DNA from: Ascoidea asiatica JCM 7603
Lineage: Eukaryota > Fungi > Ascomycota
DNA length: 31,526 nucleotides
Direction of reading: 5' to 3'
Assembly: GCA_001600695.1 (NCBI GenBank)
Contig: BCKQ01000018.1
Location: forward strand, 270,194-301,719
Part shown: positions 5,201 to 22,611 of the stretch, piece after piece
Layout of the letters: every line of letters starts with the position of its first letter
How positions within the stretch are numbered: the stretch's first letter is position 1
The notes under the pieces: model-generated
Told to the model about the DNA's origin: nothing
The model's input: the letters and a program-made list of their open reading frames with translations, nothing else
Database searches by the model: none
Made by a program: the position numbers and the translations under genes

Positions 5201-8200
5201 AAACTCGTCATCTGGTTGTCAAGAAAACAAATTTATCAAAACTTTCAGAAACTCTTTCTGATCCTAATGATTTCTCTAGATCTAATAGAGCTGCTCATTC
5301 CGGTATTATAGATATATGTAAGAGATTATACTACCAACTTGAAAAAAGTTTATTTGTCTGTACGTGCTCACCTGAGATTGATTCTTACAATTTAATAAAA
5401 AGTTCAGGCTCCTCAATTTTATCTGAATTGGAAATTTTAGACCCTGAAAAAATTATCCTATCCATTAATTTTGATTTCAAATTTTATACTGAAATTAAAA
5501 AAAACAATGATATAATTACCGGTCTAGTTGCAATCCAAAAAAGAATACGAAGTATTTTGTTGAAAATAGAAACTCCATCAATCTCTTTAATTGATTCGTG
5601 GAATTTAATTTACCGAAGATGGTCAGTCTCTTCTAATTCGCCAAGCATTTATAATGACTCGATAGAACAGAGGAATTATGCGGGGTTTCTAGCAGCTACT
5701 TCTGGTGTTTTTTTGAAACCAGAGTTCGAATCAGATCTGGACATAGATGCCGGAATTCCTTCAATTGAACATTTTATTTCTAGACATATAGAACTCCTCG
5801 GATCCGATGATATAATAACAAGAGAATCTGCTAAAGATATTTTATCTAATGATTTACATCCACTTGCGATGGATTTACTTATTGACAATGTCACTGGGAT
5901 AATCAAACAAATCTACAACAAGAAACCGTTGGAGAAAACGGATTTGATTTTACTAGATCAAATATGTTCATTATTCATGTTTGTAATGAATTCTCGCGAC
6001 AAAATTCAAATCCTTAAAATTTCATTGAAAATAATCAATCCCTTATATTTTCTAGTTTACTATATGAATGACTTAAATAGAGATAATATTGATGTGATTA
6101 AAGTGCAAATTAAATTATGCAAGATGCTTTCAATTATCTTTTCATCTCAAGAAAACCTTTTGTTGGGAGGATTGGTAAAACTCAAGAATCAGTTTGTTAG
6201 AATATATTTCAAAAAGTTCGAAAATTCTGTATTCTACCAATTTAATAGCAGACCGGAGAATCCAGGACAAAAGAAGGTTCAAGATGCTGAATTGGATTCT
6301 AAAAAGCAAAGGGAATTAGCTCATATGCATTTAGATTTAGCAGTGGAATCAATTAAAGCTATTGCCATTATGTTGGATGGTCTTTCATTAGAAGTTCCTC
6401 AACCTCAAAATGCAGAAGAATTACTTAGATCAAAAAAAATTGTTTTTGGAAATTTTTTCAGTTTGTTTCTTAGGGTTTTGGAAAAATTTAATTCCACTAA
6501 AGGAAATAAAACCATAGATTCAATTTCAACCAATAGACATAAATACACAGTAATCTCAGAGCAAACAATCCTTGCCTTGACTAACCTATTGAAATCTAAC
6601 TCAGATATAGGCTTGGAAATTGCTCTTCCTTTAGGATTTCATGATAATAGACGTATTAGACTCTCCTTCCTTCATGTTTTTACTAATATAGTGGCAGATA
6701 TTGAGAATGTTGTTAAAAAAGATGAGAATAGACAAATATCCGAATTGGTTACTTCATATAAGAATTTTGAGATTTCACTTGCCGATTCTTGTCCTCCAAT
6801 AGAAGTAGACTCATTGGCGTCTGCCTTGTTACGTATATGGGAATCAAAAGGTAAGGGCATTGACCTTGTAAGTAGCCTTTTGCGTCATGAAATTTTGAAG
6901 CTTTCTAGGCGAACTGATATTTTAAGAAGGAACAGTGTTGCAACAAGAATGCTTTCTTTATATGCAAAAACCGATGGGACGGTTTACATTAAAGCGACCT
7001 TGCAACCAGTTTTGAATCGTTTGATATACAATAATGATTTTTTTGAAGTAGAAAAATTGAACGTCAATGATGTAGATGCTGATGCTAACTTAAGAATATT
7101 CATGATATACTTGAATGATTTAGTTGACGCAATTACAAATTCAGTTAGCTTGGTTCCACCAGAGTTTATGCTGATATGCTCTATTATCGAGAAAGCTTCC
7201 CAAGATAAGTTTAAGGCACCAACCCAATTACTTGGGGTAGGTTCGTTTATTTTTCTAAGGTTTTTTTGTCCTTCAATTGTCAGCCCTGAAATAGATGAAT
7301 TGGTGTCAGCAAAATATGACGCTAAGGCTAAGAGATCATTTATTCAGTTAGCAAAGGTCTTACAAAATATCGCAAACAGATCCATACAATTATTGAAATG
7401 GCCATTGCTATCATCAAAGATGGAAGAGTTGCACAAATTAAGTGAAAAGGTGTTTTCTTTCTTAAGAACAATAACATATGATTGTAAATATAATATTTCT
7501 GAACATGAAAATTCTGAAGCTGATGAACTAGAACTAAATTATTTACATCAATTTATATTTGATCATTGGGCTGAAATTCGCTATAATTTTTTCCAGGAAT
7601 CCTTTAGTGATCCGGTGGAATTATCTAAAAAAGCACTTGTATTTGCTCATTTAGATAAAGCTGTTTCTACTTTTGCTCAGCCTTTAAGGCCAAACGATAA
7701 TGTTATTCCAGATAATATCAGAAATGATACTGAAAATTGTGGAACTCTATATGAATTCATGACAAAGTATTCTTCGAATGACTATTCATCCTTTTTCGAT
7801 ACCCCTTTCATATATGAAAGTATTTCTAGAGATGGGACTCCTACCGTTATATTGACATATTATTTTTTTCAAAAATTAGCAATCAGTTCAGAAGTGTGTA
7901 TGTTTAGATTTTTTCAAGTCATTAGTAAATTTTGGAACACTAAATATTATTTGATAATGGATTACACTTCTTTTAATCCAAATCTGACAATCCTTAACAC
8001 AGATTTATTTGAAATCTTATCACCCGACTTTCTTTGCAAAAACTGTGCTGGAGTTTTTTACTATAATATTTCTGAATATGCTTTTGATTCAGTCCTGAAA
8101 GATATTTCAAGTAGAGATACTAGTAGATTTCTTAACCCTTTTAAAGTCCGTTATGTTTTCTTATCTTCTTTTGATGACCCTCATTTACTCATGTCTTTGG

Positions 8201-18400: not shown

Positions 18401-18697
18401 AATATGAGCTTTATCTAAAACTTTGATTGCATATAATTTCGAATTATTTTTATCAGTTGCTAAAATTACAGTCGAATATGACCCTTCTCCAAGAGTTTTA
18501 CCGAATTTAAAATCTTTTACAGATCTTTTTATTATTCTTGTAGTTAATTCACCATTGGAATTTTTGACAGTTTTAATTAATTTTGCAGCACCTCTTTCAT
18601 TCCAATCATCATCGCTATTCATGGATTTTTCTGGAGTTATAGAAACTGAGGATGGAATCTCTAACGAATCCAAAGTATTTGTAGTTATTATGCTCAT
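15425..18697 (-). CDS. PKH2: PDK1-like Ser/Thr kinase Pkh1/Pkh2 (1090 aa)
   Basis: DFKFGKTLGEGSYSTV, YAIKVL, HRDLKPENILL, DFGTAK, SFVGTAEYVSPELL and GKPPFKAANEYLTFQ are PDK1/Pkh hallmarks, followed by a long Ser/Asn-rich C-terminus. PKH1 and PKH2 cannot be distinguished by eye. Confidence 0.92.
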   Translation of the reverse strand: MSIITTNTLDSLEIPSSVSITPEKSMNSDDDWNERGAAKLIKTVKNSNGELTTRIIKRSVKDFKFGKTLGEGSYSTVILATDKNNSKLYAIKVLDKAHIIKEKKVRYVNVEKDALNRLCLVNRKENMKNHGTVNLFFTFQDEASLYFVLDYAPNGELLSLLKKYGSLNENSTRYYSAQILDAINFMHKNGVIHRDLKPENILLDSHNRIEITDFGTAKLLSKLPGTDDYPKDTKAKSFVGTAEYVSPELLNNKYTGKASDIWAFGCILYQMIAGKPPFKAANEYLTFQLIMKLKYSFTAGFPSIIRDLLKQILVIQPEKRLSLSGIKNHYFFEGIDWLDTEKSVWYYPGPEISPYKFSAKSMKQMPKSRPTSKAGKVNPPPFLSQRSASAKDFGRSTKASRDNINGSRISIKKSDQSKAETIKKNAQTAAAAALNYDSKDAIKSSTVKLTTTIKAVDGSSTSNKIYDNGTINVNNGILNSEKSGFIDYSNDDKNLGPLDNIEANCPSPLSKISSKDTVQPMNSTDIFWAHFLKHPDERVFKVDDVSLNFTPTDLFEKKYKGMLIDSPLSYSLRSGSQSNGNSSYSLLTKVANGTSSGLRKNSATDSKLNSSVYSSIGDKAITHFNDLNSSESSKVTENKNNREKADNQTSSKNSTFKKLFHKPFGSTGAPPISRKLRTVVITSFARALFFSRKRSSINTTSPVPQSSNEVYILRTEIDLSHPMIRIKEVVFDKKTNLSNNENGIFAIESVNDTVIIEVPKYNINSWTVTILQAKNNFQNLNLKKFIENDPPAGAGMRTGKEAALNAALLASNQSVSNSAPISKSSPTIGTFNGLSTATNGSINSVIESSSSDTVDKSRRSSRDSDILDYYIQSKKTIQPENAKVSNFYARPQQSFHRSSKSSGNVTKRERMLDTKLNSKSAMVNHRHSNSKPLTNNNLAYGLPPSSIRFFGQSASSSPNSTQFSNPFFKQLPTMEKIENRKSSNVSPSDPNPVLRLHSKSISSIKQIVNSENSENFSKVSNLKSDVNLSSNDFKTYNGTVPSSVRTSSFSRGNNKKENDVRSTKNRNGTPKLITSMNSKFLQRSERKRRS

Positions 18698-18891
18698 TGT
18701 GATTTTGACTTTATAAAATTTATTGAAATCTAGTATATAAATTTAAGATGATTGCTTATGTAATATTTTTTCCTTATTTTTTTTTCTTGACAGTGAAAAT
18801 AATTATTTGGGTTATAAATTCTCGGTCCTTTATTGAATAATTAATATTTGATTGAATTAGTGAATAGGCTTGAAGAAAAAAACTAAAATAT

Positions 18892-18929
18892 AAATAAAAC
18901 ACAACAAATCAAATAAAACACAACAAATC
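18892..18929. repeat. Perfect tandem duplication, 2 x 19 bp (AAATAAAACACAACAAATC)
   Basis: Copies at 18892-18910 and 18911-18929, upstream of PKH. Confidence 0.85.
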
Positions 18930-19845
18930 AAATTTAAATGAAACGAAATAAACTTGAACAAAATCAACTAAAATAGATAAATAAATAAATTAAATTAAGT
19001 TGAATATGGACTTTTGTAATCTTATATCATTATTATGATGTGAAGCCTTTTAAGGTTAAATTTTTTGATTTGGAAAATATGAATACGGATGATATTTGAT
19101 TTAAAAAAAAAACTTCAGTAAAGAAAAGGAGAAATCAATCAAACAAAACCTTGTATATATTTTATGTCTATTAATGAAAATAGTATTGGTCTAAAACAAC
19201 TAAAGAAAAGGAAGGATTGATTATTATTTGAAGATACAATTTGAGCAAAGTTGATCAAATTAAATAAAAATAATCTAAAATTATTTCTCTTTGATTATTA
19301 CTTGAAAGCCAGAAGGAGAGCAAAGAATAATGAAATTCTTCGAAATAAGTTAGTCAATTGTAGTTTGAATAATTAATATCCTATATTGAATGAAATTTTA
19401 TTAATAATTACTAAAATAAAAGATTGGTTGATTAATAGAGATGAAAATATGTTAATAAACTGAGATTGACAATAACAAAGTCAAAAAGATAATGTAGACA
19501 TTCTCATAGCAGTTATCGGTTTTCTCATACAAGTTTCTTAGGAGTAGAATAATCTACATGGTAATCGTAATTTTCTCTACAGCGCTGTAGAAAAGTTGTA
19601 ACAGCCACTGCCAATACATTCAAGGAGGCGCAAGAAAGCAGGGTAAGTGGCCCAAGGTGGAATGCCGAATATCCTTAAACCGGCCCGGTTTGAAGTCTGC
19701 AGGAATTGGTCGAATTCCCGGGGTTTCCAGTAAATGCACGTGTGATCTTTAGCCCTCCCCTCGGGTGGAGTGTTTAAAATTTTCCTAACCTAATCTGAAA
19801 AAGTTAGGATTTAGAGCCCAATTTTCGAAAAGTTAAAAAATAAAT

Positions 19846-20023
19846 ATCACGTGAAGTCACGGGATATTAAAATTTTAAAAAAAAACATTTCGCTTATGCG
19901 AATTTTCATGTGTATTTTTCTTCTATAAATCACGTAGACTATTATCTGTACTTGTAGAAAAGTGCTAAAATAAAGAACATTAGAACTAAGCTTTAAAATC
20001 AATTGAAAATACGATCACGTGAT
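19846..20023. promoter_or_regulatory. Array of Cbf1/CDEI-type E-boxes
   Basis: ATCACGTGA 19846-19854, ATCACGTA 19929-19936 and ATCACGTGAT 20014-20023. Also GTCACGGG 19856-19863 and an outlying CACGTG at 19737-19742. RTCACRTG is the Cbf1 consensus. Confidence 0.6.
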
Positions 20024-20063
20024 TCAAAAGTTAGGTAGTTAGGATAGGTATTTCGAGACTTTG

Positions 20064-20092
20064 AAAGTTAGGTTAGGACCTAACCTAACTTT
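20064..20092. repeat. Perfect 14-bp inverted repeat with 1-nt spacer
   Basis: AAAGTTAGGTTAGG-A-CCTAACCTAACTTT. Confidence 0.95.
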
Positions 20093-20186
20093 TAAACACT
20101 AGGTGCACCAAAAGCAGTCTTTTCAAAATAAATATACCATTCCTTTGGATCCATCGGGTGCCAATTCAAACTTCCGCAGGAGCGTA

Positions 20187-20195
20187 ATGAGTCAT
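20187..20195. promoter_or_regulatory. Gcn4/AP-1-type site ATGAGTCAT
   Basis: Perfect match to ATGA(C/G)TCAT in the divergent PKH/SUN intergenic region. Confidence 0.45.
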
Positions 20196-21693
20196 AAAAC
20201 TTTGTTATACAGATGTGTGCGTAAACTAGGTTTAGATTTTGATTTGAGGCGCATCTGCCGGCCGAGCTCTATAATTTCTTACTTTCTTTTTAGAACTCCG
20301 GTTTTGCTTTTTTTTTAGGATAAATCCTCTAAATGTACGGTAAGAAAACCAAAAAATACAACCAGATGTATGAAATGTCTGTTTGAAGATAATTTGCTAA
20401 TTTAAATTTTAATGACTATGTGACTCTTTTGCCAAGCATAATTTTTTTCACGAATTTAAATTTCTGGTAAAATATTTTTTTTAATACAAAATTTTATGAT
20501 TTAAACCAAAAAGAAATAACTTATTCTAAAAATTTAATGTCTACAAAAGCTATTGTAAAACTGTTCTAAAACATTCTTCATTTGATACTACTATCAAGTG
20601 GTCTAGATCTTTTTTGATTTGCCTATTTTGGAGACCCTTGATTAGCAGAAATTTGATTTCAGGAACAATTAGTAGGAATATTTATTCTTTTAGGAAATAT
20701 GGCTGTAGAGACCCGCAGATTTTGTAAAGCAGCAATGCAGTTGTTTTGTAACTTAAACTAATTGGCATTTTCCCTTTTTTGTTCTTCTTCTCTTTCTTTG
20801 GACTTTAAAAACATTTTGGTTAATTAAACTTTTTTGTCAGATTCAATAAAGTCGAAAACAAATTACTATCTTAGCAAAAATTTTAATTTTAATTTCCGGT
20901 TCAGTAGATAGGAATACAATTAAAAAGTTTAAAATTATTCAAAGCTGTCAAACAGCCAATAATATCAAGCTCTTGAATTTAATTAGTATAACAGAAACTT
21001 CGTTATTCGTTAATTTTTTTTTGGTTTTGCTAAAAAAAAAACAAATGAATCTTAACCTTAAACCCAAACATATGCAGTCTGCTTAAAAAAGAAACTATTA
21101 GATAACATTCTCTAAAAAAATTTACAAATTTGTAAACAAAAACAATAACAATAATAAAAACAAAAGAAGATTTTTAATTTAGAATTTATAATACATGTAA
21201 AATTTAACCAAGTATAATTTCTAATCCATTTTTTTCAAAAACCTCGCATATTTTGATGCATTCATGTTAAGTCTTTTCTTTTAAACAACGGTTAATCCCC
21301 CATTTTTTCTACCAATTATTTCCTTTGATATTCTTATTTTTTTGATCTCGAATTTATTTAGTCTTAACATTTAAAACTAAACAAAATACCATAAATATCA
21401 AAAGACAAAACAATTATAGTACAATCTTATTATAAATTTGTTTCTGTTCAGAAAACTATCACATTCCTTTTAAAAAAAATATAAAACCAGTTTAACTTGT
21501 CATTCCTTTCAACTTGCTTAAACTAGGCTATCAATCATTCTTTTAAAGTTGCCTGAAATTTCTATTTTCATCTCAAGCCTTTAGCTTTCTAGCTTTCTTA
21601 CTTTCATTAACTTTCATTCCCTTTCTATTTTTTTGGTAAATCGTCTTATTATTTTACTGTATTTTCTCACTAATTTATTTTGCTTATTACAAT

Positions 21694-22611
21694 ATGCTAT
21701 TATCTAAAACTTTCATCTTATTAATCGCTGCCGGCGTTCAAGCAATTCCAATCCAGCAACGTCCCCTTCATCATTCTCATCATGCACATAAAAAAGCTGA
21801 GGTAACTTGTGATTTCCCCGATGATCTTGGTTTAGTAAGTGCAAACTCCAAAGGTGATCGGGGAGGTTGGGCTATAGCTGTAGATCAAAAATGTACTGCT
21901 GGCTCTTATTGTCCATATGCTTGCCCACCAGGTCAATTAATGGCCCAATGGGACCCTGAGGCTACATCTTATACTTACCCACAAAGTCAATATGGTGGCT
22001 TGTATTGTAATGAAGATGGTACCTTATCAAAACCATATTCCAGCAAAGCTTATTGTTATGAAGGTAAAGGCACTTTATCAGTTTCCAATAAAATGTCAAA
22101 AAATGTGGCATTTTGTCAAACTGTTTTACCAGGTAACGAAGAAATGTCAATTCCTACCAACGTGAAAGCTAATAAAGAACAAACTTTAGCTGTTCCAGGA
22201 ACAGATTATTGGGCTGGAACTGCTGCTCATTATTATATTAACCCTCCAGGAGTTTCTATTGAAGATGGATGTACATGGGGTTCGACAGCTAACCCTTATG
22301 GAAATTGGTCACCATTTGTTGCTGGTGCAAATATGGATGATAGTGGAAATACTTATGTAAAAATTGGCTGGAATCCAATTTGGTTAGAAGATTCAAGTCC
22401 ATATAAAAACACTACACCAGATTTTGGTATTAGAATTACCTGCGATGATGAAAGTAAATGTGTTGGTTTATCTTGTTCAATCAACCCAAGTGAAGATGGA
22501 ATCAATGGAGTTTCCAGTGATGAAAGTTCCGTTGGCGCCGGTGGAGCAGCCTTTTGTATTGTCACTGCCCAAAGTGGTGCTTCCGCCAAAATCGAAGTCT
22601 TTTCCACTTAA
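21694..22611 (+). CDS. Secreted SUN-family (GH132-like) protein, YMR244W/Adg3-like, 305 aa
   Basis: Signal peptide and His-rich pro-segment HHSHHAHKK. SUN-domain Cys pattern C...YCPYACPPGQLMAQWD...GGLYC, FCQTVLPGNEEM, AAHYYINPPGVS, CTWG and GNWSPFVAG. Confidence 0.9.
   Translation: MLLSKTFILLIAAGVQAIPIQQRPLHHSHHAHKKAEVTCDFPDDLGLVSANSKGDRGGWAIAVDQKCTAGSYCPYACPPGQLMAQWDPEATSYTYPQSQYGGLYCNEDGTLSKPYSSKAYCYEGKGTLSVSNKMSKNVAFCQTVLPGNEEMSIPTNVKANKEQTLAVPGTDYWAGTAAHYYINPPGVSIEDGCTWGSTANPYGNWSPFVAGANMDDSGNTYVKIGWNPIWLEDSSPYKNTTPDFGIRITCDDESKCVGLSCSINPSEDGINGVSSDESSVGAGGAAFCIVTAQSGASAKIEVFST

Follow-up and report, generated by a model that had tools for sequence, protein, structure and literature searches.

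The locus analyzed here raises the question of whether CACGTG boxes spaced about 84 bp apart in an intergenic region of Ascoidea asiatica form a short centromere-like or chromatin-organizing module, or whether they are simply parts of a mobile element. A sequence-only reading had noted that the boxes are placed symmetrically within an element bounded by terminal inverted repeats, and had proposed that this arrangement is maintained by selection, either for the use of a host factor by the transposon or for a transposon-derived centromere. The window, i.e., the whole stretch of DNA that was analyzed, comprises 31.5 kb (C18:270194-301719) of a 20.3-Mb, 71-contig assembly.

Genomic context

The window has a GC content of approximately 28% and a gene set typical of budding yeasts, including an Ira-like RasGAP, a GH72 glucanosyltransferase, a SUN-family protein, a protein kinase, and an MFAP1-type splicing factor. 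The element lies in 3 kb of intergenic DNA that separate the kinase gene (minus strand, start at 18697) from the SUN gene (plus strand, start at 21694), and the orientation of these two flanking genes makes the gap a divergent promoter region. The listing of open reading frames contains none of 80 or more amino acids in 18717-21693. No Rfam family matched the window at gathering thresholds, none matched 18700-21700 or the long relic on contig C13 that is described below at E-values of up to 1, and ARAGORN called no tRNA in either the window or this relic.

It should be noted that the flanks of the element (19540-19768 and 20102-20330) have a GC content well above the background of the window, reaching 53% in 19600-19768 and 41% in 20101-20280. 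Both GC-rich flanks are single-copy in the genome and have no Rfam match, and promoter elements or an old insertion are candidate origins. A structured RNA in the left flank was considered and rejected, as the folding z-scores of +1.2 and +0.8 amount to no signal. A third CACGTG (GCACGTGTGA) is located at 19737-19742, 26 nt beyond the left end of the element (position -31), and all three CACGTG hexamers of the window lie within 285 bp (19737-20021). Targeting of the insertion to existing host E-boxes was likewise rejected: the flanking CACGTG was seen at the window copy only, and its absence at the other family copies means that it reflects no targeting rule.

A dispersed family with hAT-type termini

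When 19769-20100 was used as a query against its own genome, three other full-length copies (C5:129754, C10:444292, and C29:106182) and about ten fragments were found, and a search with the better-preserved C5 copy yielded 19 candidate places on 13 contigs. The family comprises at least four full-length copies of 334-346 bp and about 15 further fragments on these 13 contigs. C13 has three or four of the places, C5 has three, and C4, C10, and C11 have two each, whereas most of the 71 contigs have none. The full-length copies are mutually 81-97% identical. Alignment of the copies together with their flanks showed that the flanks are unrelated to one another, and long open frames are located at distances of 60-600 bp from the copies. 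The identity of 97% between copies B and C suggests that the family was active fairly recently.

The termini have the form TAGTG...CACTA (TAGTGTTTTAAATTTTCCTAACCTAAC ... GGACCTAACCTAACTTTTAAACACTA), with one CAGTG variant, and thus start with the YARNG of hAT-type ends; the pattern of the left terminus occurs ten times in the genome and not once in the reversed control. Target-site duplications of 8 bp are perfect at copy E (TTCATACT) and match at seven of eight positions at copies B and C and at six of eight at copy D. At the window copy, only one of the eight positions matches and only a staggered GGTG is shared, so that its origin by transposition is deduced from the sister copies.

Two of the places deserve a comment on counting. 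The copies on C29 (C29:106182-106521) and C32 (C32:45786-45838) agree in their left flank, CTGTTCCCTC, and in a G variant of the terminal repeat, after which the sequence of the C32 locus continues as Ns. The two probably represent a single insertion that was assembled twice, on an allelic or duplicate contig, and should therefore be counted as one. A truncated copy with a CAGTG terminus lies at C4:626-735, less than 750 bp from the contig end.

Long relics and the link to a hAT transposase

The ends of the family are also found on relics of about 3.2 kb, which have both MITE ends and the remains of a broken hAT transposase. The relic at C13:383886-387072 (3187 bp) contains one open reading frame that matches PF05699, the hAT dimerisation domain, with an E-value of 2.8e-10 and above the curated cut-off. 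A 193-aa open reading frame of the same relic resembles ZBED1 RNase-like/DUF659 clusters in an Atlas feature search (score 0.95, 188 of 256 features in common), and these clusters correspond to the hAT catalytic core; a PDB sequence search with this piece returned chance-level matches only, and it has no Pfam match. The relic at C4:1500753-1502443 has the same layout, with PF05699 located about 620 bp from the same terminus, and further long relics, which are 68-81% identical to the C13 relic, are present on C11, C10, C37, C13, and C3. The transposase reading frames of the long relics run from the end that corresponds to the "right" end of the MITE, placing the right box about 400 bp upstream of the first of them. 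Subterminal GTTAGG hexamers are clustered at the ends of the long relics too, and the interior of the MITE (about 100-250) has no detectable match in them. In the whole genome PF05699 matches at three places, two of which are within longer elements bearing the family termini; all three contain in-frame stops, and thus the genome search revealed no source of active transposase.

Taken together, the 8-bp duplications of the sister copies, the dispersed non-coding copies of less than 600 bp, and the ends common to a longer transposase-bearing relic are what characterizes a hAT MITE. The boxes are therefore very probably inherited parts of a miniature non-coding derivative of the hAT superfamily, and the element in the window is an ordinary transposon relic, belonging to a second yeast hAT MITE family with decayed parents.

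Anatomy of the window copy

The features of the window copy are compiled in Table 1. It is the most diverged of the four full-length copies, and it is old: its first base has mutated from the T of the family to G, resulting in a GAGTG terminus, a target-site duplication is no longer recognizable, and decay has affected the second of its left boxes. The eight GTTAGG and CCTAAC hexamers within its 332 bp include five of the six GTTAGG and all three CCTAAC of the window (0.03 of each expected), and these subterminal hexamers are likely transposase-binding repeats. When treated as single-stranded DNA, the element has a far more stable fold than its shuffled versions (z = -4.4). The central half-box is retained in copies A-D and F and reads CAAGTA in copy G. 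In contigs from two independent studies the window copy is identical, without any difference, and these contigs end at the repeated arms; an empty-site allele was not found in DNA sequencing runs that possibly come from the source strain, and the search for runs yielded none of RNA.

Table 1. Features of the MITE copy in the window (positions are those of the window)
Feature	Position	Strand	Remarks
Non-autonomous hAT-type element (MITE)	19768-20101	+	334 bp; 81-86% identical to the copies on C5, C10, and C29
Left terminal inverted repeat GAGTGTTTAAAATTTTCCTAACCTAAT	19768-19794	+	Family form TAGTGTTTTAAATTTTCCTAACCTAAC; window copy deviates at three positions
Subterminal hexamer GTTAGG	19803-19808	+	Further hexamers at 20030-20035, 20038-20043, 20067-20072, and 20072-20077
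Inverted hexamer CCTAAC	19784-19789, 20079-20084, 20084-20089		Inverted relative to GTTAGG
Junction of copy-specific 10-nt deletion	19826-19827	.	One AAAAAGTTAG unit lost; from arm alignments
Left E-box 1 ATCACGTGA	19846-19854	.	CACGTG at 19848-19853; 81-86 nt from full terminus (19768), 80-85 nt from AGTG (19769)
Decayed left E-box 2 TCACGGGA	19857-19864	.	MITE consensus TCACGTGA, 10 nt past box 1
Central half-box ATCACGTAG	19929-19937	+	MITE-specific internal sequence; contains CACGTA
Right E-box, 10-nt palindrome ATCACGTGAT (20014-20023), fused to AAAAGTTAGGTAG	20014-20039	+	Best-conserved block of the family's right arm; CACGTG at 20016-20021, 80-85 nt inward from CACT (20100)
Right terminal repeat GGACCTAACCTAACTTTTAAACACTA	20075-20101	+	Forms GTTAGGTTAGG/CCTAACCTAAC hairpin with 20060-20077

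Origin of the mirror symmetry

The coordinates on which the sequence-only reading had based its proposal are correct. The two CACGTG boxes are each 80-85 nt inward from AGTG and CACT, respectively, their midpoint is 19934.5, and the steps between the starts of CACGT are 83 and 85 nt, with ATCACGTAG as the third box in the middle. Moreover, ATCACGTGA occurs twice in the window, with 0.03-0.07 occurrences expected, so that the boxes are beyond chance. The mirror symmetry had been taken as a preserved feature, and for this part of the claim the sister copies and the long relics are decisive. An alignment of 14 left and 12 right arms, in which MITEs and long relics were combined, gave the offsets listed in Table 2.

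Table 2. Sequences of the boxes and their offsets from the full terminus (nt)
Copies	Left box 1	Left box 2	Right box
Window copy	CACGTG at 81	CACGGG at 91 (decayed)	CACGTG at 81
Copies B, C, and D	CACGTG at 91	At 101: CACGTG in B and D, CGCGTG in C	At 81: CACGTG in B and C, CATGTG in D
Long relics	At 89-90: CACCTG (two), GACGTG or AACGTG	None	At 76-78: CACGTG (three), CATGTG (one)

The symmetry is thus exact in the window copy, but it is not a feature that the family has preserved, with left and right offsets of 91/81 in the sisters and 89-90/76-78 in the long relics. The window copy reads 81/81 because one 10-nt AAAAAGTTAG unit of a tandem pair was lost between C19826 and G19827. The unit was probably lost by slippage, and the distance of the left box from its end thereby happens to equal that of the right box. 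The argument that a spacing preserved in spite of the divergence of the arms indicates selection is therefore wrong; variation of the spacing among other copies, which the sequence-only reading itself had named as evidence against its proposal, was observed in the family alignments. Steps of about 84 bp are indeed present in all four full-length copies (84 and 86 in copy B), and they are lost in the deletion derivatives E, F, G, and J and in the long elements; as the full-length copies are 81-97% identical, descent explains the recurrence.

The same junction accounts for a second resemblance. The string TTTTCGAAAAG (19821-19840) had been likened to CDEIII of S. cerevisiae, with TCG instead of CCG, and it does read in this way in the window copy, but it is copy-specific and absent from every other copy, all of which read TTTT(T/C)AAAAAGTTAGG at this place. 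The string, with its TTCGAA, was created by the 10-nt deletion. Comparison of the copies thus shows that the boxes are features of the family and that a single deletion produced the symmetry and the CDEIII look-alike by accident.

Conservation of the boxes

Among 11 right arms, the right CACGTG ranks second of 135 hexamer windows, with a column identity of 0.955 versus a median of 0.80, level with GTTAGG, and it adjoins AAAGTTAGGT, which is equally conserved. It is kept in 8 of these 11 aligned arms, including three of the four long relics (two on C13 and one on C10). In contrast, left box 1 is of no more than average conservation (rank 48 of 156), and CACGTG is absent at this place from all four long relics; left box 2 has rank 117. 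These ranks are no formal test of selection, because the copies are few and related. In individual copies, boxes have been lost by single substitutions (CATGTG, CAGGTG, CACGGG, CGCGTG, and CACTCG), which argues that there is no constraint after insertion. Such loss is the expectation for a transposon, for which selection acts only on copies that still move. Three CACGTG are present in 31.9 kb of flanks (0.094 per kb) versus about 5 per kb inside the elements, a difference of roughly 50 times.

Is the window copy a centromere?

The proposed co-option of the window copy, which would make it a short non-canonical centromere or a nucleosome-phasing module, starts from features that are present in the DNA: the CDEI box RTCACRTG occurs as ATCACGTG at 19846 and 20014, boxes of this type are about 84 bp apart, and the copy lies within a 3-kb gap between genes. 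An RTCACRTG box and a spacer of about 80 bp are also what the family has in common with the S. cerevisiae point centromere. However, CDEII of S. cerevisiae has a length of about 78-86 bp and an AT content above about 86%, whereas the two spacers, for which an AT content of about 75-77% had correctly been given, are 77 bp with 76.6% AT and 79 bp with 74.7% AT, near the window average of 72.3% and at the background of the genome. The family has three or four boxes instead of one, it has no CDEIII with CCG, and it is present in many copies per genome close to genes, the gap itself being the divergent promoter region of the kinase gene and the SUN-family gene. One copy per chromosome would have pointed to a centromere; the genome-wide search instead gave many dispersed places, with up to three or four on single contigs. 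Boxes on one worn copy of a dispersed element mark a transposon relic and not a centromere, and thus a centromere or chromatin organizer at this locus is not supported and is extremely improbable. Nothing shows a positioned-chromatin module at the window copy.

Kinetochore proteins were also searched for. Cep3 (PF16846) has no match in the genome, which is a weak result, the control genomes being unable to register PF16846. NDC10_II (PF16787) has two matches (C47:16410-17006 and C7:852687-853280), each with the same pattern of four stops (one TAG and three TAA). They look less like a kinetochore gene than like two copies of a repeat in decay, which may be a mobile element with a recombinase.

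Candidate functions of the right box

With the boxes assigned to the MITE, it can be asked what they might do for the transposon. The family has an E-box, TCACGTGA, about 80-90 nt inside each end, with two further boxes in the MITE subfamily. The right-end box together with AAAGTTAGGT is probably a cis-acting element of the transposon. The right box would be a candidate site at which the transposase or a host bHLH factor recognizes the end, or it may activate the expression of the transposase from upstream, and MITE copies, which would carry the box by descent, might scatter E-boxes into intergenic regions. Selection of the box for the transposon's own use, by a host bHLH factor or the transposase, had already been suggested in the sequence-only reading; the conservation of the right box described above partly supports this suggestion, while the mirror spacing that had been adduced for it does not.

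Binding of a host bHLH factor, binding of the transposase, and neutral persistence of the box appear roughly equal in weight. TCACGTGA is the canonical bHLH/Cbf1 palindrome, and it is tentatively possible that the boxes are docking sites for a Cbf1- or Pho4-type bHLH factor of the host, which the hAT family would exploit for the transposase promoter or for nucleosome-free ends. This would be a sub-mechanism that is compatible with the assignment as a MITE, with MITEs seeding new host-factor sites in promoters. The presence of at least 13 HLH-domain genes with open frames in the genome, the location of the best-conserved box at the end upstream of the transposase reading frames, and the rarity of CACGTG elsewhere (about 0.1 per kb) are consistent with such docking, whereas the decay of the left-end box in every long relic is not. 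In addition, boxes are more numerous in the MITE, where there is no gene to express, than in the long element, and thus a role in transposition fits better than a role in a promoter. A second possibility, to be held just as tentatively, is that the box and the adjacent AAAGTTAGGT form a subterminal repeat bound by the element's own transposase, through a BED finger or another DNA-binding domain. The two are contiguous and together make up a block of maximal conservation, four related boxes are present in the MITE, with 10 nt between two of them, and asymmetric binding of subterminal repeats by hAT transposases is described for Hermes (PMC10368747) and Kat1 (PMC4763223) in the accessible text of these reports. 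However, the ACGTG core is not enriched overall in the long relic (three found versus 2.8 expected), and GTTAGG alone behaves as a true multi-copy subterminal repeat. That the boxes have no function, and that a founder sequence persists because the copies have not yet decayed sufficiently, is a third, slightly less likely possibility: the single-substitution losses in individual copies and the small number and relatedness of the copies would fit, but the right box is present in three of the four long relics in spite of their identities of only 68-81% to the C13 relic, and it is kept as well as the hexamer repeats and better than the terminal repeat.

A more far-reaching version of the docking proposal would be that the TCACGTGA block is a dock for a Cbf1-type host factor that the hAT family needs for transposase expression or end access, and that its insertions plant clusters of E-boxes in promoters and thereby rewire a bHLH regulon. 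This is unlikely; if true, the divergent promoter of the kinase and SUN genes would be one example of a MITE-planted E-box cluster.

Relationship to known elements

Budding yeasts have few DNA transposons and, in particular, few MITEs, so that a second hAT MITE family, found along with its decayed parents, is useful for the annotation of genome repeats. Judged by its build, the element closest in kind to the family seems to be mRover1 of Lachancea yeasts, a hAT MITE of about 356 bp that is derived from Rover1, has 8-bp duplications, and was termed the first yeast MITE when it was reported (Sarilar et al. 2015, PMC4316626). As far as the accessible text of that report goes, both families are non-coding, have a length of about 350 bp, 8-bp duplications, and few copies per genome, and have terminal repeats and subterminal segments in common with longer transposase-bearing copies in the same genome. 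In both, a hexamer occurs many times and in both orientations within the subterminal 200 bp, and small deletions are found between the repeats; in mRover1 a hexamer is repeated up to 16 times, and the hexamer is GATTCG in Rover1 (PMC4316626) and GTTAGG in the present family. Palindromic E-boxes near the ends are not described for mRover1 in the accessible text of PMC4316626, from which the term CACGTG is absent. The present family further differs from mRover1 in that all parents found here are broken, and in that the interior of the MITE is no simple deletion product of the long relics found.

Short terminal inverted repeats and asymmetric subterminal regions that are full of short repeats are also common to the family and to the hAT ends of the Ac/Ds, Hermes, and Kat1 type; at hAT ends of this type, the short repeats are required in cis. 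To our knowledge, no hAT element has been described in which a perfect palindrome of the bHLH type forms a conserved subterminal block. The assignment as a MITE also removes a false lead to a centromere. What goes beyond the routine is the conservation of this palindrome, which equals that of the presumed transposase-binding repeats, together with the density of CACGTG inside the elements. If a host factor binds the box, the family would be a simple system for the dependence of transposons on host factors and for the spread of regulatory sites.

Internal repeats of the long relics

The C13 relic contains a second tier of inverted repeats (L039:3091-3195 and 5742-5857), which are about 110 bp long, 76-87% complementary, and located some 215-330 nt inside each end. 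Judged by TAGTGTAGTGG, which resembles an A box, and GGTTCGAGCTCC, which resembles a B box, they look tRNA-derived, and they lie beside a poly-C/G run; ARAGORN and Rfam call nothing in them. Matches to the second-tier repeat are present at the same positions in the C11 and C4 relics.
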